DNA from: Marsupella aquatica
Lineage: Eukaryota; Plantae; Marchantiophyta
Assembly: GCA_973895155.1 (NCBI GenBank)
Contig: OZ316897.1
Coordinates: 4,729,976 to 4,793,975, forward strand
DNA length: 64,000 nt
Reading direction: 5' to 3'
Each line of letters opens with the position of its first letter. Position 1 is the stretch's first letter. The notes beneath the pieces were generated by a model. It worked only from the letters and a program-made list of their open reading frames with translations. It was not told the DNA's origin and did no database searches. Shown here piece by piece: positions 6,750 to 55,632 of the stretch. The position numbers and the translations under genes are program-made.

Positions 6750-9476
6750 TCACTTCTCCACTATTTCCTCAATGATGGGTCCGCTCCGGGAGACTGGCGG
6801 CTTCACCTCGTGCATTATTCCCAGTCCTGTATCCTTTGCCAATTCAATCTCTAGAAGCCTCTCCTTCTCAGCATCTACAAGTAATGCCAAAGATAAGAAA
6901 GTCGCATTGGGTTCCTCATTCGTCCAACACATAAGAAAGTATATCTTTCGAATGGCTGCTGTTATCTTTTTAAGTTCCGTACTGCTTTTCCTCCTTTTGG
7001 GATTGTTTCCTACGGCACCATCCGTTCTTGAATTTCGACTCACATTAGAGCTGGTGCTTCCAGTCTCGTTTTCTGCACTGCGATGTTTCTTATTTCCACT
7101 CATACCCCTATTGCTATCCCTCAATTTTCGAAGATCTGCATAAGTAATCTCGTCACTTCGTTGTTCTGTGGCAACCTTGGTACTTGTGTTCCGAACTGCA
7201 ACAGAACCCATACTTTGGTTCTCCGTCCCTGGGCTCCGTGAGTTGCTGCTCTCCGAGCCTCCACGGGTACTTCTTATCTCATGTTTCAATTTCACCTGCC
7301 TATCGTCTCCTAATTCTGCTTTTAGCTGCTTCTTCGCATTTTCCAACATTCTGTGCAAGTCTGCCAAAGCGCACACGACACAGGCCCTACCAAGACGAAG
7401 AACAGCAGAAGCATCATCAAACAAAGCCATGGCAAACTTGAAGCCTCCCGCATGCCTAAAAGTAGGTGAACATATGGTCTTCACGGCGTCCGCTAAAGCC
7501 ACTGGGATCGATTCTGGAGAAGCTGCTTGATCCAGAACCTGTGACGCACTCAGTAAAATCAAAGCAGCGTCAAGTGGCTCGCTTTGCCAATCACCATTAC
7601 AGAACCTCAGCGTGAAGCAGTAGTTATAAATCACTTCTGCCAGTTGCACCGGTATCGAAGGAGAAGGATCCCCGCGAATCAGCTGTCTGACCCGAGCAAG
7701 AGCTTCAGACGGAGGTCCAGGAACTTCACCGGGTACAGCCTCTAATGCCTCAGTTCTTAGTTGCTTTGGGTTTTGTTCTTTGGAAGGATATACAGGTTGA
7801 ATAAGGCTTGTACCATGTGTTGTAATGGAAATGGTTCCAGCACGGGGATTGAGCCACCACGGGTACCACGGCTGAACGAGATGACTAATTTCCCCCGCTG
7901 CCAATGCACGTAAAAAGTCTTTTCTTTCTTCTACAGAGAGGTCGTCCAAGGATACGTGTCCACCTGCACAGGAGCATCATTTTTAGTAAATTGTCTTCCT
8001 CAGTACAGAGCCATAGTAGAAACAGCGAGCATTTACCGATGGAATTCTGCCCAAACATTAATCTCGTGTACACAGTGGTGCTGCTGAAAGAAAGCTAAGG
8101 AATCCACCTCCTCGGTACAGGCACAAGGAGCAATCGGTGAACTTCTCACATGCACACTTTTGCTCTCCGGTTCCTACATCGTTGTCGAGGGAAATCCAAG
8201 GTTCATAAGAATAAGCTTAGCACACCTTCAGAGATAAGTTCGAGAGTTCGGTCGGAAAAAACGGCTCCTGATCATTCCAGGAGAACATTGTTATGTTAGC
8301 TCGTTCAGTACGGGTGAGTATTGATCTTTGGAGATTCAGCAAGTGTAAAGACGTGATGAGGCTATTGCTAAAGCCTATTTTGGAATGCAATGACGTGATT
8401 CAATGATTCTGGTTGAATTTATCACCCTGGCGACCATCACTGTCATCGTCTTCTTCGCCCTCGTCGCCCAGAGTTTCATCTTCGATTATACTCCGACCAT
8501 CATCGTCAAAACGAATACGCTTCAATGCCTCCAACATGTTCTGCTGGCTTTCTTTGCTGGCCTGGATGTCACGCATTTCTTCAATGACATTGTTGCGCAT
8601 GAACGACTCTGTACATCGCAGACTGTGGTTCTGAGAACAGAAAGGAAACTTTAGGGTACCGTGCGAAAGAATACAAAGGAGAAGGCTTTCATACAACTAC
8701 AGGGCGATTTATCGGCTGAAATCACAAAGCACAGCTGGTAAGAAGTGACTAGATAAGAGAATTCTTCCTGTCAAAACCAAATTTTGGGAAGTACCTTGTA
8801 GCACGAGAGAGAGCAATACCGCAGGTTACACTGGGGGCATGTGTATTTCGAATACTGCCTCTCACATCTACAATGAACAGAAACCAATTCGCATGCAAAT
8901 GATGCAGAGTAGGCAATCTTGGATCAAAAACCAGTATCAAGCTCTTGACGTTGCCAAACCAGGAAAACTATCAAAGAGCGGGCTGAATAACGGCCTTCTA
9001 GACCGTCAGAGAGCAGATTAACCACCTAATAATCTGTCATGAGAAAGTTTATGGCAAAATCGCAACACGACGGAAAGCAAGTGTGAAGAGACCTTAACCA
9101 CATGATTCGAACATCTAAACAAGAGAAAACCTATCATCAACCAAATCATGAGATAAATGACTTTGAAAATAACCTCAAATACTAACAAGCTTGTAACTAA
9201 GATTCGCAGGGAAATGCTTCTTTCTAGCGTCGACGACGAACCGCCTTTGCCTACTATCTCACATAAATTTTCCATATAATTAAGTACCTACAGAATTTAT
9301 CGACCAAAATTTGAGCATCCCGTCATTTCTCCGAAAAGGCGAAGTTCATGCATGCCTCCAGAGTGACACAAACGAGTCGCAATGATCCAGAGATGAGGTG
9401 AGGCGGCAACTTACACTCTGCAAATTAGGCGATGCTCTGGTATTGCGTGAGCCGGATTTCCCATAGTCGCGGTCAT
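6750..9476 (-). CDS. ZNHIT2: Zinc finger HIT domain-containing protein 2-like, 5 exons (~531 aa)
   Basis: Exons 9476-9415, 8867-8795, 8630-8426, 8267-8226, 7963-6750 with GT-AG junctions and consistent phase. N-terminal HIT finger LICRVCERQYSKYTCPQCNLRYCSLSCYKNHSLRCTESF. Downstream conserved-looking blocks PWYPWW, YNYCFTLRFCNGDW, RKIYFLMCW. The exon 3 donor could alternatively lie at 8435. Confidence 0.88.
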
Positions 9477-10197: not shown

Positions 10198-11435
10198 CTA
10201 GCCCCATGCCCGTTGCACGAAAGATTTCGAGTGAGGGCAAGATGTCAAGGAGAAGGCAAGATGTCAAGGAGAAGGCAAGATGTCGAGGCGAGGGTAAGAT
10301 TTTGAGGCGAGGGTAAGATTTTGAGACGAGACAAACATGGATGTGCATTGCAAACATGTAATTCAGGCAAAAAGTCAAACAGATTAATACAAATTAAAGT
10401 GATATAATCTTTATTCACCCTCGTATTCACCCCTTCAATAAAGAACCTCATCATATACAATTTTTTTGTCACCCTTGCTTGACCCTCCTTGGAATCCGAA
10501 AGTAAAATCTTGATAGTTGTAGGAGATATTTCCCTTGAAAATGCTGCATACAACTGTCCGTGACTAAATACAGGCTTTGAAATCTGTAACCTTACATGTT
10601 CTAAAGTCTGACCTGGAGCTTTATTTGTGATCATTGCATATGCCACTCGAATGGAAATTGGACCCTACGTAATAAACAAGGAAGTGATTTGTCATATGTC
10701 AACGGAATCCGTGGGATAATTGCAAGGGTCTTTGCATGTTTTCATGCAAGAACTCAATGCCCGTGCATTGCATGAAAGATGTCGAGGGACAAAAGATGTC
10801 AAGGAGATAAATGATGTCAAAGTGAACAAAAGATGTCAAGGAGAGAAAACTATCAAGATAAGCAAAAGATGTCAAGGTGATAAATGTAAGGGTCCCTGCA
10901 TATTTTCCTGCAAGAACCCAATGCCCTTGCGTTGCATGAAAGATGTCAAGGTGACAAAAGATGTCAAAGAGAGAAAAAATATGTCAAGGTGATAAAAGAT
11001 TCAAGGTGAGCAAACGATGTCAAGGTGATAAAACATGTAAAGGAGAGAAAAGATGTCCAAGTGAGCAAACAATGTCCAAATGATAAAAAAGGTTGAGTCT
11101 GAGAGAAAAGCTTTCAAGGTGAGCAAAAGATGTCACGATAAACAAAAGATGTTGAGGAGAGAAATAGATGTTGAGATGAGAAAAAGATTTCAAGGAGAGA
11201 AAAACATGCCAAGGTGAACAAAAGATGCCACGGTGAGCAAAAAATGTTGAGGTGAGCAAAAAATGTTGAGCTGAGAAAAAATGTCAAAGAGAGAAAAAGA
11301 TGGTGAGATGAGAAAAAGATTTTGAGATGAGAAAAAGAATTGAGGAGAGAAAAGATGTTGACGTGAGTGAAAGAGATAAAAACATTTTGAGATAAGCAAA
11401 AGATGTTTAGGTAAGGCAAAGATGTCAAGGCAAAC
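10198..11435 (-). mobile_element. Helitron remnant: 3' terminus, PIF1-helicase C-terminal fragment and 20-bp minisatellite
   Basis: - strand ends cgtgcaacgggcatgggg-CTAG followed by T at 10197. ~10440-10720 translates (with a frameshift) to IPRIPLT...RRVQ/AYAMITNKAPGQTLEHV...PVFSHGQLYAAFSR, the RepHel helicase C-terminal motifs. 5' boundary is approximate. Confidence 0.85.
10775..11435. repeat. ~20-bp minisatellite (consensus ~AAAAGATGTCAAGGTGAGCA); related array at 10220-10330
   Basis: Many degenerate tandem copies visible directly. Explains the low-complexity ORFs at 10720-11437. Confidence 0.9.
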
Positions 11436-12879
11436 ACTTCAGATCTATGAGATATTTTAACTAAGTTTCGAACATTAATAAACCCAAGGCACAGCTTTTT
11501 AAATGTTAGTTGATTTAGGCATTTGATGACACTATATTAGACCACTAAAGTAGCATGGGCACTCAATTTGAGTTCAGAAGACTATTTTCTCAAGATGAAT
11601 TGAGAAGTTTGTTTTTCTCCTCGCTTTTCTCAACAACAAACCCTAAGCTTTCTAGTAGCTCAATTTTGTCTGTAGAAGATTGGTCACCCAATTTGTCAAT
11701 GTACTTTCAAATAATTGGAAATTCTGGAAATTTCACTGAAGTCTGACTTTGGCAAGTTTTGAATTAGAGGTTAATAGCCTCATGACCTTGACGCAACTAT
11801 TCACCAAATGGAGAGAAGGGCAGAGCTTAAACTTTGAGAAAAGAGAAGTATGAGTAGGAAGGGAAATGTTATTCATGTTGTGCTGGACAAGTATGATAGA
11901 TTCTACACTTTGCCTTGTTTAGATTAGATTCTCCTCACAAAATCATTGTGGACCCAATTCAATGATGTCCTGAGCAGTTTGGCATTCCTTCAACTGTCAC
12001 ACGAATACTTTGCTTTGCAGGCCAAAGTTGACGACGTGGTTATCACAAGCAGTTGTCAAAATTGGGCCTTTTCGCTACATGCAACCAGATTCTCAAGCTA
12101 AGAGAGTCAAAATTCAATCCATGGGAAGTCCATTTGAAACCAGATCAATGTGTGATCAAATGAATTGTATCAGTTAGTTGAGTTCACATTTCGACCATAG
12201 CTAACAGTTTGCAATAATTGCTAAAGGCCAGAAATCTTACTCCAAGTGCCAATTACCCTTTAACAAAGAGATTATCAAGTTAGTTATTAGTCATTGTTGT
12301 ACTTTGTAACACCAACCTGCACCTAAATCTATGGGGACCATCTGCCACTCTCCAAAGAAAGGCAAACAGCTCCAGGCTGCCATTGAGCAACTAAAAGCCA
12401 TGCTTAAACCATGGGAGCAGACTGACAGTCCGGTTTCTCTAGGGGATGATGATGAGGAAAATAGTTAAGTTCCCGCTGTGGTTTAGTGCTGGTAGTCCCC
12501 TTCGTCAGGGTCATAGTACTAAGGACTGCTTCCTGTACTACAGGGATCCAATTGATGACAATGAGTGGCGGATGAATTGGATTACTTTTGGCCTGTTTAG
12601 TTTGTTTCCGGTGGTTTCTTTGTCTGGGTTGGTTGTCCCCTCCCTGGTGGTTTTCGCCCCTGGGTTGGTGTTTGTTGGGGTTCACCTCTCTTCCCCCCCG
12701 GCTTTTTTGGGGGTGTGGGTTTTTTTGGAGAAAAGAAGAAGTTATTAGTCATTGTTTATTATATGAAAGAAATGTTTTTAAAATCTTTGAATTTAAGTTT
12801 TAAAATTAGAAAAGTAACTAAAATGGTTACATAGTGACAATTTTATTGGGCAATTTTACCCATCCTGATCTTTGCATTT

Positions 12880-16769: not shown

Positions 16770-19700
16770 TCACTCGTCCGGGTCTTCTATGTCATCTTCA
16801 ACACACATCTTCATGAGAGGAGTTTCCAGTACAAAATGCTCTTGTTGCACCCCCTTCGCGTTTCGAAATTGTAAATCTAACTTATGCTCGTCAACATGCA
16901 TACAATCTTCAACCTCCATCATATGGGAGGCATCGACAGCGATTGCGGATGAACCAGAACGATCAGGCCCAGACAGGAGACGAGAAAAAGGGTGAACTTC
17001 CGTTGCTTTCGCTAGGCCATTATATGTTCTGGCATTAAAGATTCCGTTCAAACCTTGGGCTGACATCTCCATCTGTAGAAGATACGCAGAAGTTAAGACA
17101 CTCCAGATCACACTTCCAAATCAACCGTAAAAAATCATCTAAGGTCCTGTGAAATTAAGAGTTGCACTTCATCTGATCATATGAGTTCGACATAGCTTCA
17201 AAACAAGTTGCCAAGTTGCTTAATTCGAAGTTTAAAAAAACGGGCTATGCGTATGATTGGAAAGATTTGGCACCCAGCAACGAATTGAGAATACCTTCTT
17301 CAGTTTATTGCGTCGCTCAACTTGCCAGAGTGCAGGAGCTCTCAATGACTGCCACCTGTTACCATAGCAGATAGATATGTTCAACAGCAATACTTTCTCG
17401 AAGTCGAGAAGAGCACCATCACGGTTTTTGTACTTCTTACAGAAGACTTCAAATTTCTTCAGGTAAAAGTAGATACCTTCGTGGAGCAGGGTGACCATTT
17501 CCAAAGAGGACTCCGCGAGCTGCAACAGAATTGGCGCCCGCAATTGCAACTTGTGACGGATCAACATCATTTGAATGTGTGAAGATATTTCTCGAACGGA
17601 AACTTCCTCGTGCTCCAAGCAAGCAGTCCGTGTCACTCAAGTATGCGGCAACAGCGGCGACATCGTCCATCGCATCCTCATCAATAAACTGCAACACTGC
17701 ATAAAATTTTCGAATTAGTGACACGCGATAGAATCGTCCCTTCAACCTTATTAGCTGGACATTCTTCTCAATAAAAATCGATTTACCAACGAAAGCTAAG
17801 AAACTTAATTATCTTAATCCCCATAGATGATACTAAATTGGGATTGTCAAAACGCTGCAGAGTAATGAAAGGAGTCACTTGTGTCCAATTGAAGCAGATG
17901 GACACCAGCGAATGAGCAACGAATATTAGTCACACCGTAAATTAGTGCAGAAGAAAGTTACCATTCTCGTGAAGGAAGGCTAGAAGTGTCGCAGAATCTG
18001 TCTGTGCTTGTGAAAGAATTATTTCAGGCTCCTCCATGTCTAGAGGGTATCTACGAAATTCCTCTTTCACCTGTGAGGGCGTAATGGTCCCTGCTGAACT
18101 CCAGAACGTTCTTGTTAGTGGATGTCAAATGTGACCATCGAGGGAACCCGGAAGCTCAATTCAAGTTAGAGGGAAATTGCACCTGAACGAAGTTGCTCAT
18201 CAGTGAGCCTCTTATTGTGCAGAAACTTCCCCAGGGCATGGAAAAGAGAGAGGCTGTAGTCTTTACCCCCACCAATGCCAGGGTACAAGTTCTTGTTCAG
18301 GGTTGTTTCCTGACGAAGTGTCCCTGTGATCTGGAGATTTTTAGGATCAGATGGGCTACTGCCCAGACCCCCAGGATCCCAATGATGGACAGTAGGAGAA
18401 TGGCATCCAAGGCAAACAAACTGCAACGAAGTCAAAGCTTGGCGGATGTCCCCTGCGGAGCTCTCTGCGATCGCAGATATACTCTCAGACGAGATCCTAC
18501 ACTTCTCTACGAGTTGAACTTTGTTAAGAAGCTTCTTCATGGCATTAACAGTGACTGGATTGAAGGCAATCTGCAATAGGAAGTGGCATGCATCTGAATC
18601 AGCACCTTCAGTGACATTTTCAAACATGCTTTCTAAGCCAGACACACAACAGTCTGAAAGCTGTGTAGTGAATATCAGATTCTAATAACATTGCAATTGA
18701 GCAATTGAGCAGACTGACAGGCTGATGCCATCCGGTTCATGAGGCAGATGAAGGGTAAACACATCACTGCTAGCACTGCATTAAATGTTACGAAGTGGTC
18801 AGACCTTCTTAGCACCCCCTCTCTCCAAGGCTTCAAGAACATCCTTTGCTTGATCTCTTTCGCCTAGTCTTTCACTGGTGCCAATCTCCTCTGTTACCAC
18901 CACAAATGTGGGGAAATCACGAGACAAGGCAAGGCGGAACAAACAGTTGGCAAGCCGTTGTTTGTGTTCTCGGTCATTTACAATAGGCAGATCATCAATA
19001 AGCAGGACTTTGGCACTCTGTGACGGGGACACGACTCTGTCATCTCCTGAAAATGGTCTCACTCGCTCTGACGTGGACAGGGCAACTCGTACAATTGGCA
19101 ACGAAGACAGTTTTCTTCCTCTCTCTAAAAAGGCTTCAAATTCGTCAAGTTTGGAAACATATGTATCCCCTGCTCAGCAACAGAACACAAAATTTTTGTT
19201 AGCACCAGTGATCCATTGCGGAACTCTCCTGCTCGTGTCATAAGCGTAGTATATTAAGAGACCGCGGATGAGTCATAAAAGCTTGGAAGTTGAGGATCAG
19301 TTCTTTACCAGAAGCCGCATGGCGTGAGTACTCTTGCCAGAGCTCAGGTACTGGTGTTGTCCATTCAACCAATTCTACGCCCAAGACGTCAGCAAGAACA
19401 TGAACTACCGCCTGCCCAAAACCAATTGTCGAGTCTTAATGTGCTCTGGGATAGAACCGGTGCAAACTGGTGCTCCCACGTTACTGATAAACGAGCTTCA
19501 ACGCCTTCGATTATAATTTAAGACAATCCAAAGCAGGTCCTTTCAGACATGATATGGCTATATGACTACTTACGGTTTTACCAACTCCAGCGGGCCCAGC
19601 GAGTATCAGCACACGGCTGCCTGAAAGGGACTACAAAAAAGAATACACCATTATGAAGAGGAGAAAAGACCAGACTTTGTCCAGTTGTCCAATTTAACAC

Positions 19701-36011: not shown

Positions 36012-37164
36012 CGGACCCCCATTAGGGGTTCTTTGCAAAATTCCTGGTTCCACAGTGCGCCACATCACCATGGCACGCTGCAAACAGGAAGAGACTTGTT
36101 TTTGGAAAAAATTAATTTCTGCATTCGTGTTGGTGGCAAGTTTGTTGTAAAAACTAGGACGCCATGCCGTAAAAAAGAATGTAAAAAAACTAACATGCAA
36201 ATCAAAAGACAAAAAGATTGAGGTAAAAACTGTTCTCAATAACTGTTTTATTTACATTTTGATTTTATTCAAAACATAAAATTTTCCAGGTAGCAATTTT
36301 TGATTTGACATTGCAAAGTCAAATCATAATGAAAACTCATGTATAATATGGCGATAGAAAGATCTTGAAGAGACGGTCCTGAGGAGCTCAACATTGTCAT
36401 CATTAGGTAAGAATTGAGTAAATAATTTGAAAAATAGATTTTACCCATGATTTCATAGTCTCTAACGTGAATAGAAATCTTTGTTGTACAACCCCTGAAA
36501 TGTTTACCCCTTCCATGAGAATGAACCTAAAATTGACAGATTTTATAGAATACTAAAGAGATTATGAATTTTAAAATTTCTTTAGCTTTTTAATTAACTT
36601 AACATTGATAGATTTAGTTGAGTTCTAAGTAGATTATAAGTTTCCAATGTTCTTTAGCTTTCCAATGAGTGTAACATTGGGAGATTTTATCAAGTACTAA
36701 AGTGGTCATGAGTTTCTAACTTTCTCTAGCTTTTGATTGATTCCAAATTCCACAATTGAAGATTTGTTTCCATGAAACTTTTTGTTTTAAATGATAATGC
36801 AAAGTTATTGATTTGATGACACCGATGACTTCTCTCTCTTCGTCTATCTACGTGTAGGAATTGAAAGTGATTACTTTTGATGCAACTTGAGTGCATCCAA
36901 CATCCCTTCGATATCGTGGAGGAAACCGTCGAGCACTGTTTTGCTGAAGTGGGCAATTAAGCTACCCACACATTAAACAGTAGTTCACAATGTAGCTGGT
37001 TTTGCGATTGATGTTAATTATGGTTGACTTGGTAAGTTTGGCAACTGTTTCAAGTGTCAAACATTTACTTGTCCATTTTTGAATTTTTTTCCTTTTGATT
37101 TGGAGGTCCATCTAGGCTTCAGTTTCTAGATAATTGCCTCTAAAATAACATGGGGGTCCACGGA
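36012..37164 (-). mobile_element. Family A, copy 2 (1153 bp, diverged)
   Basis: TTA|CGGACCCCCAT...ATGGGGGTCCACGGA|TTA, with the same ~70-bp internal sub-repeats at ~36510-36730. Confidence 0.8.
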
Positions 37165-42100: not shown

Positions 42101-45100
42101 ACTGAGGCAGCTTGGCCAACCATTCCTATCCTCAAACTCACACACTCAAGCATCTAGCTTGACTATGAGCTCTACACAAGACTAATACCCAGCTTACACA
42201 TCACATAAGGCCGGTTTGATTGATTTAATGAAACTGGTTTTTGATCTCCCTTGTTTTTAATCTATTTGGAGTGCCAAGGATAAAAAAAAAAATCCCTAAA
42301 GTCCCTGGAAGTGCCATACTGGCACTGTCAGGCTGTCTGCTGCTACTGTCGTCGGCAGGCTGCCCCGGCCCTGGACCGATCACATTGAAATAATACTAGT
42401 CAGTGGAACAGGTATAGACCAATTGAAGTGGAGTATGCAAGTGTGAGGTTCAAATTTCACTTTTGCAACGAAGCTCTTTTGACATAAATACTACCCAAAA
42501 GTGATAGCTTTTGCCACTTAGAAAAAATGGCAAAATTTTGATTTGGATGGGCAGCAGAGGGTGCGCCTGTCATTAATGCATCCCAGGGACTTTTTGTGTC
42601 CGTGACTCTTGCTTGATCTCTTGTCCTGCACCTACTTTCACTAGACAACCAGATGTACCTCTGTGCTTTCCCTTGGTTTGGGAGATCAAATTCTCAAACC
42701 TGATTGTCTGCTGTAGCGGGCTCAATTCGAAAAAGCAAACCTTCATAAATTATTTGCCCACCCTCTGATTGTCTGTCTAAGGTATAGTTCAGTGGTATTT
42801 GGAAATTCTTTGACACATAGGATGTTGTTTCCAAATAGCAGTCCAATGTACAAATATATGATCGATTCTCAATAATACAACTTGTTAGAGCACTCCCACA
42901 TGTGTAAATATCTGATCCAAACTCAATAAACCAAACTCAATAATACAACCTGTTCCTTTGACTCGGGTGCCAACCCCCTTTTGTGGGTCACCCCTGTTGT
43001 ATGCTGGATTTTTGGATGAATTTCAATGAGTTTTTTCGAGGCAAAAAAAGAAAAATAATACAACTTAGAGCACTCCTGCCGGTGCACACCAAACAGCCCC
43101 GCCATCGGGGAGTTTAGAGAGGCGGTGAAGCACCTGTGTATCAAAGTTCATGAAGGGTCTGACAAGTTTCCCCACTTTTCCCACTTTTCAGTTTTGGTGG
43201 TTGGACACTAGGAATAGTTAGATTTCCCTTTCCTTACACACCACAGCAGACCATTAGCCAATTGCAGTTGTTGGGCAATCTTGGGCTGTGTCCCGCTAGC
43301 TTGTGGAGCACCGGACTGCCAGCCTTGGGAAGGAAAGATGTTGGGCTGTGATTCTAGGGTACACAGACCAGGGCACGGTGGGGGTTACAAAACTGAGCTC
43401 GCTGGTTGGCCTTGCTATACTCACTCCCAGTGATGGGTGTAACACATCACATGCAGAAATTACTCTAAAAATATATGGGGTAACATGCCTTCCCCACCAG
43501 TTCTTTAGTGTGAGGGCTTTTGTAACAACATAGTATGGGGTTTGGAGATTAGCAAGGTTAGAAACGTCATCCTGAAAACAAGGTAGTGCTCTCTGGCTTG
43601 GACACAGAGGATGGGGCGTACAGAGACATAAGATCCAAACTCAATCTTGGATGTTGGGATTTAGAAGCTGTTGTCACACCAAAACCCTAAAAAATCAAAA
43701 AATCAAAGAAGGATTCACGGAACAGCAAGCAAAGGATGGTCATGTACAAGACAAGACGGCTGAAAGTCAAAGGCCAGGAAGTGCCCGCTGGGCTTGGACA
43801 AGGGGAACCTGCAAGTGGGTTGGAACTGTACCTATTGCTGATTTAAGACATAATATCAAGGTCTAAGTGGATGCATGCCGACATTTGCAGAATGATTATT
43901 TAGCGTTATTTACACCCTCACAACAAAACACAAAAGTTCCGTGCAAGACAAGAAAACAGCAAGAAAACAACCAGGAAAACAGATTTCTTCATTCCCTCTT
44001 TGAGACTTAGGATGAAATTAAGAGAAATAATGAATTGGATGATCTCACGACATTACGAAATGAATATCTGGATGACAAAATGAGGAGACTTTTTGAGGGT
44101 TTGCCCTTCTAGCATTGTGTACCGTTCCTCAAAGATTTTTCCGTTTCTCAAAGAAGAATTTGAGGCAACGGAAAGAGAAAATCTACAATATAATTCTAAA
44201 TTCAGCAGGATTACATTAAACTGAGATTTGTAGTACAAATCTGTCAGTAGTTTTTTCACGTCCGTCCTTTCAATGCCAATTGTAATCTTCTCTCTGGGCT
44301 GGTCCATCTGGATTCTGGTGCAGCATGAATGGATTGACGTACCTTCTCAGCATCCGCATTATAAACCTTTGAAAGGAATTGACCATAATATTTTAAGCTA
44401 TGGTCTCAGTCTAAATTTGTACTTCCATTGGGGTTCTCGAGAAACAGTAGCCAATCTGTTCAGGATGTCAATGCTCACAAATTCCCCAATCGAGGGCTGA
44501 GCGATCGACACCCAGGTCTTGCTCAGACGAACACAATCGAAGAGGAGTATATGATCGAGGGCTGAAAGATTGACACCCATGCTCGTTCAGACGAACGCAT
44601 TAAAAATTGAACAGGGAGTCTATCTATGAGGTCCGTTTGCGCTGCATGCAAAATGTGCATGAGCACTTGTCGTGTGGCTTCCTTCGTGGGCCCCTCTCCG
44701 TCTCTAAGTCTATTGGTCTCTCCCTCTTCTTCCTGTTTTGTCTCTCAGTCCTGTCGTCTCTGTTTTGTCTGCGAACCTTGGGAGGGGAACAAACCGAGAG
44801 ACATGCCCGAAGGTTTTACTAACCTTGACACGAGAATCACGCAAGCTGGTGTAATCACAGGCACACCGGCCCCGAGCTGCTGTCGTCTGGAATCGCTCTA
44901 ACCTGTCACCGACCTTATTACTCACAAGCTAGCCATGCTGAAGAGGAGCTGCAAAACTTGGATCCTACAGTGTGCAGCCAGAGTGTGACATACCTGGCAC
45001 AGGTTGTAAAGCACATGGAATTTGGCAGAGGCCGCCCTTAACAAACGCGTCTTAAGAGTGAAATAATACTGTCTTGTTAGATGGGACCTGGGCGTATATC

Positions 45101-45679
45101 GTCACCTTCGCTGATCTGCTGACGCTTCCGTTCTTGAGCACTGTTTAAACACATGGAAAATCCTTCCTTTTTGCGTGTACCTGAAAGCCGTGTATTTCTA
45201 GAGCGGGGGGGCTCGTTGCACGCTGGTAAGTTTAGCATGGAACACATTCGGGGAATAATCGTGGTCTTTCTCGAAGGGTATCTGTAGAGCAAAGCCACGA
45301 CAAAGCATGCCGTACGCTCACCGTTGGCTCACACCCGGGCCGGGCATGCTCTTCTAGCTACCCCAGGCATTGCACTCAATAGGACATTGGTGCCATCATA
45401 CAGTGCTAAATTTGCAGATGTCGAAGGTACGGCACCGGGACCTGTACTGGCCTAGAGAAGTTTTCAAAGCTAAATGTTTAAACGACCTCCATCTCCATGA
45501 AGAACTTATATCATGTCCCTGATAGAAGCACGGACGCTGTTTAAATATTTTACTGGCTAGAAGGTCGGTGGTAAATGAGACTCACAATTTGAATAGTTTA
45601 CAGAAAAAGGGTGGCCAGGGTTCAAGAAATGTCGACGTCATCTGTTCAAAGGCTCGCCCAATAAGCTGTTTCAACCTTC

Positions 45680-45687
45680 TATTTAAA
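45680..45687 (+). promoter_or_regulatory. Candidate TATA box (TATTTAAA) of the secreted-precursor gene
   Basis: cTATTTAAAc lies ~170 bp upstream of the ATG at 45853. Confidence 0.45.
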
Positions 45688-45852
45688 CGCAGCTACTGGC
45701 ACCACTCTCTGCACTGAGCTGATTATTGCTGTCAATCCTTAGAAGAAGCTGCTGTACTCGTCTGGTGTCACTTGTTGACAGCCACATTCTGTCTGTTCTG
45801 TTGCACAACATTTACTGAGAAACGTAGGCAATCATTGCAATTTTCAAGCAGC

Positions 45853-48442
45853 ATGTCTTCCTCATCATACCGTAGAATCATGGATCCTTTGGCCTCTTCT
45901 CACACAGCGGGCTCGCGCACTGGAAAATGCCTTCTAGTTGTGTTCTTCGTTCTTGTACTCTTCTGTCACAGCATTGTGGCCATTGCAGTTGCATCAGACT
46001 CCGGAAATCTTCAAGGTACCGGCAAATTTTGTAACCTCTGTCTGAATTGAGTACACGGGTTGATCGATGTACCTAGGTCGATGATGTCCGATTCGTTCTT
46101 AGCAGCAGACTGAATCACGAGTAGCGGCCTTTGACAATCGATTGTAAGGTTGAACGTGCGCTTCGAATTGTCAAGCGATCGTGATCGTCCCATATCGATT
46201 CGTTTGGGCGATGGTTTGGCCTACTGCACCAATCATCTCGATCAGGTCGCATTTCAAAGTAGCTAGAAAGATTAGTATTTTCGACCAATTTCGCGCTACT
46301 TGTTCTTCGCATTGTTGTGTATATATCATCGGAGTAGCCGTAAAGTCCGATACTGAGTGTTCTGACTGGGACGGTATGATATTCTGATAGGTGCTGCCAT
46401 TAAAATTTTTTTGGAGCCTTTGTAGAGTTTTTAAAATATGATCTTATGATTCAATGCATTCAAGAAAGTTGAATGTAGCATTCGTCCGTCTCTTCAAATA
46501 ATTTACGCCTCGATCGCGATTCGTCGCCTGTCCTTTTGAATCGTTTCCTACACAATCGCAAGGCAGGATTTAGACGTTCCTGATGTGGTTTCGACAAGTA
46601 AATATTGATCGAGGAGAGCGCTGAGATTCCTTTTGCTGCAAATCATCAGCATGCATTGTAATTAGGCTGTGCTTTTAGAATAACTTCCATCGCATATATT
46701 GTCAAATGTGTTACAGTAGTTCCTGAGTTCCTACACACTTCTTACATCGCCGTCCGCAGTATTGGCCATGTCAAGTCCCACTCTCCTGTCTAGGTTCTTA
46801 GTGCTGAATTTGGTTTGAAACCTTGCTGCCTGATCAAGTAAGAGTTTCTCATCCATTTGAGCTCCAGCTAGCTACCAATTTCGCGGCAGAAAGTGGATCC
46901 GATTCGTCGAGCACGTGTAGCTCAAGCTGCACTTCGTTGCATTGACTATGCCTTACAGTGCATTATAAGCTTTAGCGGGTGCTGGTGGTCTATCCAGATA
47001 CCTCTTAGGTAATGATTGATGATCGTGATCCGAACCATTCGGCTGTACTCTGCAAATTACAGGACTTCCTAGTCGGATACGGGAAGTAACTGTGTATTTC
47101 GTCAAGTTCAGCAAAGGAATTCTCATGTGATGGGTACAATGCTCTGTGGACATGTACACAATGGTCTGTTTGACTCGTCTCCCTGAACCACACCGTCTCG
47201 TAGCTGCACAGAATTCTAAATGCAGCTTCTCTGGATCATTATGAATGCAGGGGTGGACGGTGTTTCTAAAGATTTCTTGGCAAGGCTTCGAATTCGGGGT
47301 GAGAAGGCTAGACAAAACGGTAACTTTTTGCCTCCTTAGCCAAATTGATGTGATCAACCAGAATTTGAATTTCACAGCACAGGACAGCAAATGTTTTCCA
47401 GATGAATTCTTAGCTACCAAATACGTACGATTTCTTTCGCTAATAATGGAACGAATTTCCTGACTTTCCAGATCGAATTGGGTCGGAGGGAAGAGCACAG
47501 GCTGAGGTCATGCCCCCTGCTATTGGCATGCGTCGGGTGGAGGGATGTACAAGGACCCTGGACGATGTCTCTCCTCCAGGGACGTGGCATACGCCTAACG
47601 GCCAAGATGACGTTCCTCCAGTTGTCGCCGAAGACACGTCGGAGCAAACTAAGCACAAAGATTGGCACCTCAGCACTATCTCCGGGAGAGTTATTGTCCC
47701 TGACGCTGACAGCACTTCTCCGGATACCGTCGGAAGTGAAACGGAGTCAATCATTTTTCAGCAAAAATTTCGTGTAGTAGAACCCAGATTTCGTAGGAGA
47801 AGCCTGCTGCAGGGAGACATTTCCCCTCCAGGAATGTGGCCAGATTCTGACGATGACGAGAGCCAGCTTTCTGAATCTGTGCTACTACGGGGACGAAGAC
47901 TAATGAATAAGTGAGCATCCTGTCTTTGGAAGGTGACGAGCAACGGAAGTGCCTTTAAACGCTTCGAGCGATAAATTACAGTATAAGACACCATTTCGCT
48001 GCCCAGAGTGTTAATTACCGGATGGCGATCTGGACCATTTTTCCTAGTTTGCAATGCTTTATTTGGGTCGAAATTCTGACCGGCCATACCACTACTGTAC
48101 TGTTCCTTCGTAGCGCGCTCGGTAGCGCCGCGGCGCTAAGCCAGGACTGTTAAAACGACATGGCCAACGACCTGCGAAGAAATTTCCTGGCTGGGTTGGA
48201 TACTCCCCGTTAGCGGGTCGGCAGTACCAGTGTCAACTCGTGCATTGGTATCCTATAGACAGGAGTCCAGAGGTCCAGAGGATCACAGGATTGGCTACAG
48301 CAGTTCTGCAAGTGAGCATGAGAGCTTGCAGACTCTTGGTGAAACTACACAATCAAACATCATCGAAGCTGGACGTGAAGCACCGTACGAATTGTTTGCG
48401 CCCGAGTCGCTGACTCGCTTCCCTTCTTTGGAAACTACGTAG
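45853..48442 (+). CDS. Orphan secreted pre-pro-protein, candidate multi-copy peptide-hormone precursor (276 aa as 3 exons; 201 aa if intron 2 is retained, stop at 47914)
   Basis: Exon 1 45853-46015 (hydrophobic signal KCLLVVFFVLVLFCHSIVAIAVA, donor G|GTACC). Exon 2 47472-47910 (acceptor tttccag, donor AA|GTGAG). Exon 3 48214-48442 (acceptor ccccgttag). All phases match. Confidence 0.75.
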
Positions 48443-49013
48443 ATGTTTCTTGTACTCAGCACGCAACCTAGGAGCTTAGCCAGAGCCCCGCCCCGCCCAG
48501 CCCAGGTTGCCAGCCACTAGCTACTAGCTCTTGTAGCGTACTTTTACTTCATAGCAGATGACATTTGTACAAATATACGACAAGACAACATATCATAGCC
48601 TGCTGGGTTGCAGCTGGACGAGGAACTGAATCCTCGTTCGCGAATCCAAGCCCATACACATTAGTGCAGACTGACACCGTCTTGGATTTGAGATGAAAAT
48701 ATATTTGCCTAAACAAATGGCGAGCAATTCGAATAAAAGATTTTTTCTTCTCGACGTGCTGAAGAGTTACTTCGTTGCATTGTGTAGCAGTGGACTACAG
48801 ACTTGAGTTATTCAAGCAAAACATTGGTCATGCCAGACTTACATGAGATCTCTTTCTAGAGCATCAGCGGATCATGGAAAGATATTACTCTGTCTGGAAT
48901 CTAAACAAATATCTCTCTTTAGCCACCAGCTACTGTAACTCACGAGTGGTTGCTTTGAGCATCGGTGGAAGACGGGCATGACTCACATCCATCGTAAGCA
49001 GAGCAAACGAAAT

Positions 49014-49607
49014 ATTACTTTTGCCAGACCTGCGTGTGATTTGTTTCAGCAGGAGCGAAGACAGGGGTGACTTACTCTGTAACGAATTCAAACAAACCAT
49101 CTATTATCCGCTCTTAATAGACTAGACTGTAATTTCCTCGAGCAGATTTGAAGACGGGCGTGATTTTGAGTGTGAGCCAATGAAACTCTTCCAAGACTGC
49201 ATGCGATTTCTCTGAGCATATAAGTTGATGATGGGCACAATTTGTCATGTAAGTAATTCATACAGAAGCCAAACTTCCTTGGGAATTCTTTCATTGAGTG
49301 GTCGGGCATTACTTTTGCTAGACCTGAGTGCGATTTGTTTCAGCAGGAGCGAGGACGGGAGTGACTTACTCTGGAACGGATTCAAACAAACCATCTATTA
49401 TCCGCTCGTAATTAATAGACTAGCAATTTCTTCGAGCATGATTGGAAGACGGGTGTGAATTTTAGTGTGGGCCATTGAAACTCTTCCAAGACTGCATGTG
49501 ATTTTTCTGAGCGTATATATTGATGATGCCTGGGCAAATTTGTCATGTAAGTAATTCAGACAGAAGCAAACTTCCTTGGGAATTCTTTCATAGAGTGGCC
49601 GGGCATT
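49014..49607. repeat. ~295-bp tandem duplication
   Basis: 49014-49307 and 49308-49607 align end to end (attacttttgc.agacctg...gagtgg.cgggc). Confidence 0.9.
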
Positions 49608-50497
49608 GGTCATGGGCATGATTGCTAATTGTCAAACGGAATTCAGTACTCTGGAGGGTTGCTAGGGCATGTTCTATGGACGGTACACCTTCTCAAGTGT
49701 TTTTCCTTTGTACTTTAAAGCTTTTTAATAGGCTACCCCCAAAAGAGGGACTTATTACTATACTAACTCCAAACTATTTTTATTGTCATACTACCCCCCA
49801 AAATGTATATAAGTTTTTTAACCCTTATTCTCACCCACATAGTCAAGTGATTCCAATTGATTAAAAAAAACACTAATATTTTCATAAGTTTCAAAATTGA
49901 ATTAAAAATAACTTGTTATTCTTTACGGACCCCCATGAGAGGTCCCTTGTAAATTCCCTGCCACGAGGTTGCATCACATCAGCACAACCAGCCACAAATA
50001 GGACAGATCATATTTTTGACAGTAACAAAAACGCACATTCATGTTTATGGCAAAAGCAACGTAACTTTTGGGGTGCCATGCCATAAATATTAAATGTGAA
50101 AAAACCAGAATACAAAGGCAGAGATGTCATTTAGTAAAATAAAGTTACCATTCTGATATTCGTCAATGATATATCAATGTTTTACATCAATACTCTTATG
50201 TTTTTTAATTGTTTGCAAGTTTGAAAAAATAACCAATCAATAAAAATGTACATAATTAGAACCCCTTTGGCCCCACATTGTAAAAACTAAGTAGATAATC
50301 AATTTCCTTAGTACTTGATTAAATCTTTCAATGTTTGATTTATTGGAAAACTCAAGATCAAGAAACTCATGACCTCTTTAATACTATCTTCATCAAATTT
50401 GTCAATGTCAAACTCATTGGAAAGCTAGAGTAAAATTAGAAACTCATCATCTCCTTAGTACTTGACAAAATCTTTCAATGTTAGGTTCATTGGAAAG

Positions 50498-51935: not shown

Positions 51936-52084
51936 CTTTGTCGTGGGGATTCCCTTTAGAAGGCTAGAATCCGTATTGTATTATTTGAGTTTATGTGAAA
52001 AAGGTTTTACTTAAAAGCTTCATAGTAGTACTATTAGAGTATATATGTTACATTCTATATGCAATGTGTACATTCTACAATGGT

Positions 52085-52290
52085 ACATAGTAGTTTCACC
52101 ATTTACACATACTAGTTTTATCAACTATGCATAGTAATTCCACCAACTACGCATAGTAGTTCCACCAATTACGCGTAAAAATTTTACCAACTACGCATAG
52201 TAGTTGCACCAATTACGCATAGTAGTTCCACCAATTACGCGTAATAATTCCACCAACTACGCATAGTAGTTCCACCAACTATGAATAGTA
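52085..52290. repeat. 21-bp minisatellite (ttccaccaa.tacgcatagtag)
   Basis: About 9 tandem degenerate copies. Confidence 0.9.
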
Positions 52291-52848
52291 CTAGCACACT
52301 TATAAGTGCTTGACACTTATAAGTGCTTGATGCTTGTCACTTGGCTTTCATCCAAGGGTCAAGGCATCGATCCATGCCCTCTTGGAAATCATAAAGGGGC
52401 ACTATAAATAAAGTGAAGAGGAGCACACTCTCCTCATTCGTATTGTTTAATCTATCATGTTGGACTCGCAACACTGTAAGGAACTCTTCCCTCTCTTGTG
52501 CATATGTTTTGTTTATTATTTACATCCATGTTTGGGTACTAAGTTGATTGTTGGCCTTAGAACTATTTTATGTTTTGTGTTTATTAGTCTTGAGATCAAT
52601 TTAGTGTGCTTGTAATAAATAATATGATAAATAGAGTACCTAGAGTTTATCCCCCACCTGCTGTGTCATTTGTCAATCCTTTTTTAATTGAAATTCATTG
52701 TCTTAGCAAGCATACCATGAGAATGCATCTTCTTTATCATTTTGGGTTTGAGTTAAGGGAAACAGTTATGAATAGCAATGCACCATTTGTATACCCGATT
52801 GTTGTTTATGGAAATCAATGAAATGTAACTATTTTTATTTTATATTAG

Positions 52849-53441: not shown

Positions 53442-55632
53442 GGAAGCCGCTCATCGTAGAGTGGGACAAAGGCTGTGATACTCATGATCACTCTAACAAA
53501 GGCTGTGATACTCATGATCTCTCTAATTCTTGACGAATACTCCCAATGTCACAAATCAAAAAGCTAGAGAGATTGAAAACCTCATGATCTCTTTAGTATC
53601 ATGAAAAAATCTAACATAAAATTTGTCAATGTCGGACTCAATGTTGGAAAGCTGAAAGAATTCATGAACTTATGATCAAAATTTCTTATTGTCACACTCA
53701 TTGGAAAGACATAAGAATTTAACAACTCATTTGGAACTCGACAAAATTTGTCAATCTAAGGCTCATTGAAACCCTTTCTCAATTAAGAGATGTCACAATC
53801 TCATCACCATCACAAACTTAGCCGTTGCAAATTGATTTATTCGATTACATCATCATCGATTATCCGCAATGCTTGCTTCCCGACTTCAATTGTTCGCGTC
53901 CCTCTAGTCTTCAACTGAAGCTCACTCTAAACATAGGTTGACGTCAAATGCAACCTTTATGTTGAAGAAACAATTGTTGCTCTTCCCCCTCACACCATAA
54001 CTTTCTTAAACAAAAAAACCTACAAAACCTTCATGTGAAGTGATGGCTCGTTCGTTTTGTGCGTTCTTCCCACCAAAATGACCATCACTCTTTTGCCAAC
54101 AACTAAGTGTTGTACTCCAGTCTGTCTTGTGGCGGTAATGCTCAATATAACTCACAGATGATCAATCAAGAATGGTAGAAACACGATTTCTCCAATGTGT
54201 AAATGAAAACCGTAAAAAACTCAATTCCTCCATATTCAACCTTCCATTTGTCAAACCAGAGAGATCATATCAACCAGATCAATCTCCTCTATCTTTCAAA
54301 CGTTCTCTTTGTACGAGCACACACCAAGACCACCAGGAGACTCAAAACCATTGGTTACCGTCTGTTGAAAATTGATTTCACTTCATCACACACACATTCC
54401 TTGGATGAACATGGGGGTCCACGGATCAATTTGAGAAAATTCTTAAATCTTCTTTTAGAACCAATAAAGCAACCCTATGCTTCATTGCATGTGATGTGTC
54501 ATTTTGTGAAAATTAAACCCTCAAGAATGGTCTTAGGGATCCTAGATCATGATGAGCTTCTTATCAATATGTTTGGTTGCTATTGTAGACAATGAAGACC
54601 ATTGAGCAACGGTCATGTTAAGAAGCAAGTGCGACTTTGTATGAGAGTTGTCGTCGACAATGATAGAGGCATTGGGTTGCTTGCTCAAGGAGTTCCCTAT
54701 AGACATTTGGGCACCAAAGGGTACTTAGGCAAGGGTACTGGGATTGGTGAGGGCACTCGGTGGCAAGGTCCACCACTTCCAACATTGTTGATTCCAACAC
54801 CAAGCTCCTCTATGGTCTAGGCCCCCGGGACGGCCATCTAGTGGGGACTAAATATGGGGGGAAGTGGTGGACCTCGCCACCCAGTGCCCTCACCAATCCC
54901 AGCACCCGCGCCTAAGTGCTCTTGGTACCCGAACGCCTTCATAGAACTCCTTGAGCAAGTAACCTGGTCAGGAACTTGGCCCGGAACTTGGTACCTTGTG
55001 CACCTCTAGCGGCCACTCCCATACAAAGCTGCACTTGTTGGGCCCTAACGCAAACGTTGCTCAACGGTCCTCACTGTACGTCTACACAAGCAACCAAACA
55101 CCTAGGTAAGTAACCCATAAGATCTAGCGGGGGATCTAAGCCCTCCAAGACTAGCATCATAACTCAAGCTCAACAAACTTACATTGGTAAGTAGATCAGC
55201 GAATAGAACCTCTTGGCCCACCCTGGGCCCACATGGCCTAGCCATAAGCCAAAGCTAGAGCCAACACCCATTGTTCATCCTGAACAACCCCTCTTTGGAT
55301 GCTGCTCACGCTTCCCTACTTTATATCCGTCATTGGCTGACCGTTGTGCCCTCAAGACGTGCTCATGGCCCAATTAGCTTCTCGGGGGTTTCACTTCCAC
55401 AAAAATGGCACATCACGTGTGACAAAGTATAGGGTCATTTTATTGATTCAAAGGGAAGACTTAAGAATTTTTTGAGAAGAACAATAGGGTCTTTTAAATC
55501 AAATTTTGAGACTTATTAAAATAATAGGGTCCTTATCAACAAAATTTTGGAATATTCCATGAATATTCTAACTTTATAGGGGTTGAAAAATTAAAAAAAA
55601 TCTTACATTTTATGGGGTCTGAGGCCTAAAAA

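Follow-up and report, generated by a model that had tools for sequence, protein, structure and literature searches.

The liverwort Marsupella aquatica carries, on contig OZ316897.1 (GenBank assembly GCA_973895155.1), a locus that had been predicted from the nucleotide sequence to encode the precursor of a new family of secreted peptides with a repeated SPPGxW motif (hereafter the original prediction). The surrounding 64,000 nt (positions 4,729,976 to 4,793,975 of the forward strand; hereafter the window, to whose own numbering all unlabelled coordinates refer) were analysed. Judged by its homology to other liverwort loci, this is a real liverwort gene with three exons on the plus strand (45853 or 45880-46015, 47251-47319 and 47472-47914), and it belongs to an unnamed and undescribed family that is found so far in liverworts only, in both Jungermanniopsida and Marchantiopsida. 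The proteins of this family share a precursor-like architecture, with a signal-like sequence, no recognisable domain, a variable number of a near-invariant unit and flanking basic R-x-L-L sites. We favour, at a probability of about 0.55, the reading that the window gene encodes a secreted peptide precursor of the multi-copy type that would be processed at R-x-L-L sites. The sequence observations behind the original prediction are confirmed in part, its secreted-peptide interpretation is partly supported, and the gene is a candidate for such a precursor.

Gene structure at the window locus

Homology searches with the window were run exon by exon, and the exons were kept unjoined in every query. 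The window proved to be collinear with a locus of Calypogeia fissa (L001): exon 1, the last exon at its two ends, a small middle exon and patches of the 5′ and 3′ flanks aligned at 67–89% identity, while the introns could not be aligned. The annotated C. fissa protein, P0003 (GCA_965154635.1), is likewise encoded by three exons.

Exon 1 (45853-46015) was confirmed as originally proposed, with an ATG at 45853, a hydrophobic N-terminus and a GT donor at 46016. The ATG opens a stretch of 54 codons that contains a strongly hydrophobic, signal-peptide-like segment and ends in ..DSGNLQ. Its DNA is ∼77–80% identical to C. fissa L001:5927-6106, where the frame is closed by an upstream stop and the first Met aligns with Met10 of the window, the second ATG at 45880. 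For these two reasons 45880 is taken as the conserved start; the ATG at 45853 is a possible start. The C. fissa protein P0003 is annotated from an internal Met, and the upstream in-frame Met that aligns with window position 45880 (MGPLASSH.., L001:5938-6000) gives it a more complete signal-peptide-like N-terminus.

The original prediction also had three exons, of which the first two stand. Between them lies a conserved exon that it missed, here called exon 1b (47251-47319; 69 nt, phase 1 on both sides, flanked by AG at 47249-50 and GT at 47320-21). Exon 1b encodes a block of the type ..FLARLRIRGEK.., and its homologues are L003:993-1052 and, in the C. fissa model, the second exon (L001:7283-7360). 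Because it is phase-neutral, a direct 46015/47472 join is also in frame, and its omission went unnoticed. A minus-strand open reading frame (ORF) at 46953-47498 (181 amino acids) was considered as a gene and rejected as spurious; it has no family match and spans an intron and exon 1b.

The last coding exon (47472-47914), referred to as exon 2 in the searches, is a 146-codon open stretch that begins after the confirmed AG acceptor at 47470-71, carries both motif units and ends with TGA at 47912-14. Its two ends align with C. fissa and L003 at 67–84% identity. In C. fissa and L003, the protein ends two to three codons past RRRRLL; at the same place the window has the basic site R-G-R-R-L-M (47888-47905), followed by N, K and the TGA. 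Because this stop position is common to P0003 and L003, the TGA is likely the stop codon. The revised coding sequence is 648 or 675 nt long and encodes 215 or 224 residues, with the start at 45880 or 45853, respectively.

The originally proposed third coding exon (48214-48442), joined by a 47910/48214 splice, would instead add about 76 residues. The splice signals themselves are acceptable, with a good donor (GTGAGC at 47911) and a usable acceptor (AG at 48212-13); the stretch is phase-compatible and open to 48442, and in L003 a GTGAG also overlaps the stop codon in the same phase. Against these stand the shared stop position, the lack of a GT at the corresponding position in C. fissa and the lack of any protein-level counterpart in the relatives; a tblastn search with the proposed exon gave nothing significant past the stop of either L001 or L003. 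At the DNA level, conservation with C. fissa is confined to a 56-nt patch (48404-48459) that straddles the proposed exon's own stop codon. Contigs of a related organism, denoted organism B, carry a 1-nt insertion at 48270, inside the proposed exon, and indels at 47933, 47945, 47949 and 47965, just past the TGA. We consider a third coding exon very unlikely; the stretch is probably non-coding, as 3′ untranslated region or flank.

A protein family found so far only in liverworts

An exhaustive phmmer search with exon 2 against 1.84 billion cluster representatives returned 11 matches. Nine carry a DISPPGMW unit and six reach 1e-10; eight strong members had E-values from 1.4e-36 to 1.4e-9, and P0009 was additionally found at 2e-6. 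P0008, P0010 and P0011 are repetitive and lack the motif and were discarded as false positives, P0008 and P0010 being long Thr/Ala/Gly-rich proteins. In both the phmmer alignments and the collinear C. fissa locus, similarity to other family members extends beyond the octamer. Source names and taxonomy place one member in the Jungermanniopsida (C. fissa) and others in the Marchantiopsida: Marchantia polymorpha (Mp8g11620, Mp8g11600 and Mp1g09210), M. paleacea and Riccia fluitans. Further members, without organism label, are several Logan contigs and one JGI contig. No significant match outside liverworts appeared among the 1.84 billion representatives, a restriction that is provisional because, in a database of this size, a distant protein with just one short unit would be missed through its low score.

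The family matched nothing described. Pfam detected no domain in ten family proteins and no relevant match in the three window exons, with none for CLE at E ≤ 10; a PDB sequence search with P0003 found no relative. A match to a known protein family, named in the original prediction as grounds for refutation, was not found. A search of the ESM Atlas gave no usable match, Rfam had no match in 44000-50000, and a protein-collection search with exon 2 recovered two short ORF calls only, with no annotated window product in the searched length range. Neither the string SPPGMW nor the identifier Mp8g11620 was found in the literature searched. The function of the Marchantia gene Mp1g09210 has been reported as unknown; its expression rises strongly, together with that of small heat-shock genes, in thermospermine-deficient Mpacl5 thalli (PMC11020214), which indicates that the family has at least one transcribed and regulated member.

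The Marchantia and Riccia members lie in small tandem clusters. No Pfam-annotated genes were found among their neighbours within 10 kb, and genomic context thus offers no clue to a receptor or a protease.

Anatomy of the repeat unit

A set of 41 units from 12 proteins and the window gave the consensus R-x-L-L-[R/G/A]-D-I-S-P-P-G-M-W-P-x-S-D-D-D-E. The core is nearly invariant: Asp is present in all 41 units, Ile in 37, Ser in 40, the first Pro in 38, the second Pro in 40, Gly in 40, Met in 30 (Leu in six) and Trp in 40. Upstream of it, Arg occupies position −5 in 28/41 units and Leu positions −3 and −2 in 34/41 and 30/41, with Arg, Gly or Ala at −1. Downstream, Pro (27/41) is followed by any residue, Ser or Thr, three Asp, and Asp or Glu, and a second site, R-R-x-L-L, usually lies ∼20 residues beyond the unit. 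Information content is 3.0–4.3 bits per core position as compared with ∼0.6–1.7 bits in the outer flanks, bearing out the expectation that orthologues would conserve the motif preferentially.

The number of copies per protein ranges from one to at least 11, with variable spacers. At the Marchantia locus, one frame holds 11 units; the annotation of Mp8g11620 begins within the repeat array and leaves out the two units upstream (L007:9815-11320, M. polymorpha chromosome 8). A minus-strand neighbour of 172 amino acids (L007:15113) has a single RALLR-DVSPPGMW unit, whose position 2 is Val, like that of unit 1 in the window. Proteins of the C. fissa type have a module of the form APPP..WF..SQDGED.FLRQALV..KLKQ between two units (P0003 at ∼115–200, P0001 and P0004; L001, L003 and L006), for which no Pfam or PDB match was found.

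Signal-peptide-like N-termini were called by hydropathy and a (−3, −1) heuristic in the window protein, the C. fissa protein, Mp1g09210, Mp8g11600 and two Riccia proteins. Complete examples combine a short n-region with a hydrophobic core, and positions −3 and −1 are taken by small residues. By the same heuristic the window protein has an AVA|SD site and an uncharged hydrophobic stretch of 23 residues, and the C. fissa protein a hydrophobic region of 12 residues.

The two units of the window protein

Both motif copies of the original prediction, DDVSPPGTW (47561-47587) and GDISPPGMW (47813-47839), are present and in frame in exon 2. A six-frame scan of the whole window for DISPPGMW with up to two mismatches found only these two places, and no second copy of the locus was detected elsewhere in the 64 kb. 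The motifs are not chance occurrences, being homologous to the units of other liverworts.

The two copies are not the equivalents that had been supposed, since only the second is canonical. Unit 2 (47792-47860, plus strand) reads R-R-R-S-L-L-Q-G-DISPPGMW-P-D-S-D-D-D-E, and thus has D-I-S-P-P-G-[ML]-W behind R-x-L-L-x (47792-47839), an arrangement that unit 1 retains only in degenerate form. The eight residues of its core are the same in C. fissa and L003, from which it differs by one and two synonymous changes, respectively, and by no non-synonymous change. Unit 1 (47552-47587, plus strand) reads R-T-L-D-D-V-S-P-P-G-T-W, followed by H-T-P-N-G-Q-D, and is the most deviant of the 41 family units. 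Its Thr at position 7 occurs in no other unit, its Val at position 2 is very rare in the family, and His replaces the Pro after Trp. Its upstream site is lost, T-R-T-L-D standing in place of R-x-L-L-G. In C. fissa, L003 and L006, unit 1 is canonical, RK(I/L)LG-DISPPGMW-P(T/A)PDG; in a divergent organism B contig, it is altered further (D>E, V>D, G>R).

The three strings that had been proposed as processing sites, RRVEGCTRTL, RRRSLLQ and RGRRLM, are all present, and the last two fit the pattern. The first contains T-R-T-L, with Arg at P3, and is neither RxxL nor R-x-L-L. Because only unit 2 is canonical and it is bracketed by RRRSLL and RGRRLM, the window gene would probably yield at most one canonical peptide, from the C-terminal unit. 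The pro-region is not plainly acidic, as had been described: exons 1b and 2 together encode 27 acidic and 24 basic residues, and no Tyr. In the sequence without a recognisable domain, 64% of the residues are disorder-promoting and one is Cys. The middle module of ∼80–100 residues of C. fissa-type proteins is absent.

Comparison with known peptide systems

The defining features of the named families were looked for in the window translations. The CLE motif R-x-x-P-x-G-P-[DN]-P-x-H-[HN] (12–13 residues, near the C-terminus) is absent from the exon translations, as are the CEP, IDA and PIP motifs, which end in G-H or H-N and have SGPS/PS[AG]PS or PGxSPG cores; the unit found here ends in an acidic run. 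The Asp-Tyr sulfation site of the RGF/GLV/CLEL and PSY peptides is also missing, the unit starting with Asp-Ile and exons 1b and 2 being free of Tyr. RALF peptides, with RRxL followed by YISY and four Cys, do not fit either: exons 1b and 2 encode one Cys and no YISY, and Pfam gave no match. The placement of the motif outside CLE, CEP, IDA, PIP and RGF was therefore correct and extends to RALF.

The family resembles precursors of post-translationally modified peptides and is a member of no named family. It is established that the HypSys precursors of Solanaceae, multi-CLE precursors and CEP precursors combine a signal peptide with a domain-less pro-protein from which several short Ser/Pro-containing peptides derive, in varying copy number, and in these respects the liverwort proteins are like them. 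There is no sequence similarity to these precursors, however; Met and Trp are part of the liverwort motif, at whose end an acidic run stands in place of the terminal His or Asn of CLE, CEP, IDA and PIP peptides. Unlike the HypSys type, the family is limited to liverworts as far as the search reached, and hydroxylation, glycosylation and activity are putative in it. The C. fissa protein P0003 agrees with the window protein in family, exon plan, collinear locus, two-unit layout and stop position, and differs from it in having the middle module and a canonical unit 1. The Marchantia members differ from the window protein more, with two to at least 11 units of the type RALLR-DISPPGMW-P-x-(S/T)-SDDDE.

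Lyciumin precursors, too, are secretory proteins with repeated octapeptide cores that end in Trp; they have 12 cores and give octapeptides whose C-terminal Trp is linked to Gly (PMC11253845). The units could likewise be core peptides of a modified natural product, such as a Trp-cross-linked cyclic octapeptide, made by a split burpitide-type pathway in which the cyclase is encoded separately. The invariant Trp at the end of the octapeptide and the many repeats accord with this, and plants do have multi-core precursors and split pathways (PMC11253845). The characterised lyciumins, however, all derive from precursors fused to a BURP domain (PMC11253845), and neither the window exons nor any of the ten family proteins contains BURP. 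Nor does the core fit the lyciumin pattern Q-P-x-G-x-x-x-W: its N-terminal residue is Asp rather than Gln, and its Gly is at position 6 rather than 4. In addition, the Pro and the acidic run after Trp are conserved, and the surroundings of the Marchantia and Riccia loci showed no cyclase gene. A natural-product origin is highly improbable in the light of these differences.

Proposed processing of the precursor

In the secreted-precursor reading, the protein would enter the secretory pathway and its Ser-Pro-Pro might be hydroxylated and arabinosylated, Ser-Pro-Pro being a classical context of both modifications. Subtilases of the S1P/SBT6.1 or SBT3.5 type would cut after R-x-L-L, and Asp-dependent trimming might then expose the invariant Asp. 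The product would be an extracellular signal peptide starting at or near DISPPGMWP.

The proposed cuts have parallels among mapped processing sites. SBT6.1 and SBT3.5 cut RxxL/RxLx sites: RALF23 is cut at RRIL|A by SBT6.1/S1P, and PROSCOOP12 at RRLM|G by SBT3.5 (PMC13082318). The former is comparable to the R-x-L-L directly upstream of the conserved peptide in the liverwort family, and the latter matches the R-R-L-M of the C-terminal site in the window. PROSCOOP20 is cut at TLLR|D by the Asp-dependent SBT3.8 (PMC13082318), which parallels the RALLR|DISPPGMW of the Marchantia and Riccia units in its LLR|D; a cut of this kind could explain why the Asp is invariant. By the pattern of its sites at unit 2 and at the C-terminus, the window protein is a candidate substrate for S1P/SBT6.1-type cleavage. 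The mature motifs of this set of substrates (RALF23, CLEL6/GLV1, PROSCOOP12 and PROSCOOP20) are unrelated to DISPPGMW, which has no YISY with four Cys as in RALF, no Asp-Tyr site as in RGF/CLEL and no SCOOP context. Unit 1 of the window has no such site, and cleavage is putative throughout the family.

The family-wide form of this proposal is that the DISPPGMW units are the mature cores of liverwort-specific secreted signals, probably modified at hydroxyproline (Hyp), almost unchanged since the split between leafy and complex thalloid liverworts, released by S1P-type and Asp-dependent subtilases and read by a receptor. We put it forward tentatively, at somewhat less than even odds. If true, it would define a land-plant peptide-hormone family without an angiosperm counterpart and with members in Marchantia polymorpha.

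Several points weigh against the secreted-precursor reading. Peptide release from any family member is deduced from sequence patterns. DISPPGMW lacks the C-terminal His or Asn typical of ligands of leucine-rich-repeat receptor kinases, and we know of no receptor for it. The hydrophobic stretch of 23 residues in the window protein is long enough for a membrane anchor. A search of sequencing runs found no RNA run for M. aquatica, and splicing and expression of the gene are accordingly putative; the four runs with matching contigs are DNA, one of them resembling a Hi-C library (GATC-bounded pieces). The window copy itself has a degenerate unit 1, a sign of relaxed constraint, and lacks the middle module. 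In the divergent organism B contig, each of the five differences listed is non-synonymous, and the relative L002, with a short middle like that of the window, can be translated throughout only after two frame changes.

The possible anchor is one of the features that agree with a different role for the family: secreted, cell-wall or membrane-anchored disordered proteins in which DISPPGMW is a linear motif within the intact protein, for example a Hyp-glycosylation, cross-linking or docking site, and R-x-L-L belongs to the recognition surface rather than being cleaved. Conservation does run past the octamer: the Pro at +1 and the acidic run are conserved too, leafy liverworts share all 38 residues at the C-terminus, and members of the C. 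fissa type have a conserved middle module that is not a repeat. Ser-Pro-Pro is, moreover, a classical context of Hyp-arabinosylation in extensin-like proteins. Yet a copy number of one to at least 11, variable spacers and R-x-L-L sites on both sides of the unit are hallmarks of a polyprotein precursor; the sites match mapped subtilase cuts, and other features of extensins or arabinogalactan proteins, such as long SPPPP runs, are missing. An intact-protein role is rather unlikely on this evidence, and the secreted precursor remains our preferred reading.

Selection on the window copy

The changes in unit 1 and the absence of the middle module raise the alternative that the window copy is a decaying paralogue, non-functional or barely functional and heading to a pseudogene. 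Unit 1 is off at three core or adjacent positions as well as lacking its R-x-L-L, three of the five listed substitutions of organism B fall in unit 1, and the double frame-shift of L002 and the lack of an RNA run for the organism point the same way. The ratio of non-synonymous to synonymous substitution rates (dN/dS) was assessed from the reliably aligned ends of the last exon only, whole-exon values being set aside because the middle parts are not homologous. The ratio for the 5′ part was 0.20 against C. fissa and 0.35 against L003, and for the 3′ part 0.22 and 0.13, respectively, with a synonymous divergence (dS) of 0.6–0.9 over both ends. Ratios of 0.13–0.35 at this distance against two relatives argue against decay, as do a frame that is open over three exons, intact GT-AG sites and the perfect preservation of unit 2 and the C-terminal site. 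In addition, none of the listed organism B indels, a subset of the total, falls within 47472-47910, as compared with several just outside. We consider decay of the whole gene unlikely, while granting it appreciable weight. In our reading, the window gene is kept for its signal sequence and C-terminal unit, and unit 1 is drifting.

L002 (L002:1-560; a Logan contig from SRR32618930) has the short middle ISGRVVVPDAD, an intact unit 2 and no recognisable unit 1, and may be a pseudogene or an assembly error. Across 45300-49000, organism B (runs X3 and X4) has contigs identical to the window together with contigs that are ∼2–7% divergent, with, for example, 15 differences in 47604-47833. The two sets of contigs may represent two haplotypes, polyploid homeologues or a mixed sample. 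A 1616-nt contig from the same organism as the window (run X2) matches it only at 45560-45610, 45852-45901 and 45997-46029, that is, in a patch upstream, at the start of exon 1 (50 nt) and at the end of exon 1 with its donor; the hydrophobic core differs (95 nt becoming 89). The contig resembles a paralogous member of the family from another place in the same genome, and a similar contig is present in organism B.

Other features of the window

Several repeats are distributed over the window. A long array with a 19-nt period (AAAAGATGTCAAGGNGAG-type units) occupies 10237-11444, with at least 16 copies of 60–80% identity, and eight copies of a 22-nt tandem repeat lie at 52064-52303. At 49014-49412, a repeat occurs in two copies 294 nt apart (∼105 nt aligned, 91% identical). 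A family of 72–74-nt repeats is found in three places and in both orientations (50305-50497, 2437-2935 and 36520-36740). Large inverted matches between 2010-2686 and 53541-54219 suggest transposon remnants flanking the region. Of two minus-strand ORFs, at 6750-7949 and 18166-18645, one contains an SHQ1 domain that passes the Pfam cut-off (E 2e-6) and the other has RFC1-like AAA+ lid matches below the cut-off; both are probably exons of ordinary housekeeping genes.

Significance

Surveys of peptide signalling in bryophytes have dealt mostly with families already known from flowering plants (PMC8462819, PMC9901580). The window locus contributes to the new family a divergent member, a corrected exon structure, evidence of unit-specific decay and a link to the expression result for Mp1g09210. 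For annotation, truncation or a start within the array of repeats affects several public models of family members, and the window gene needs a four-part correction, comprising the likely start, the missed exon, the stop and the removal of a third coding exon. In Marchantia, a model that is tractable to genetics, Mp8g11620, Mp8g11600 and Mp1g09210 offer concrete targets for peptidomics, gene knock-out and the search for receptors. A peptide family confined to liverworts would show that early land-plant lineages invented peptide signals of their own.

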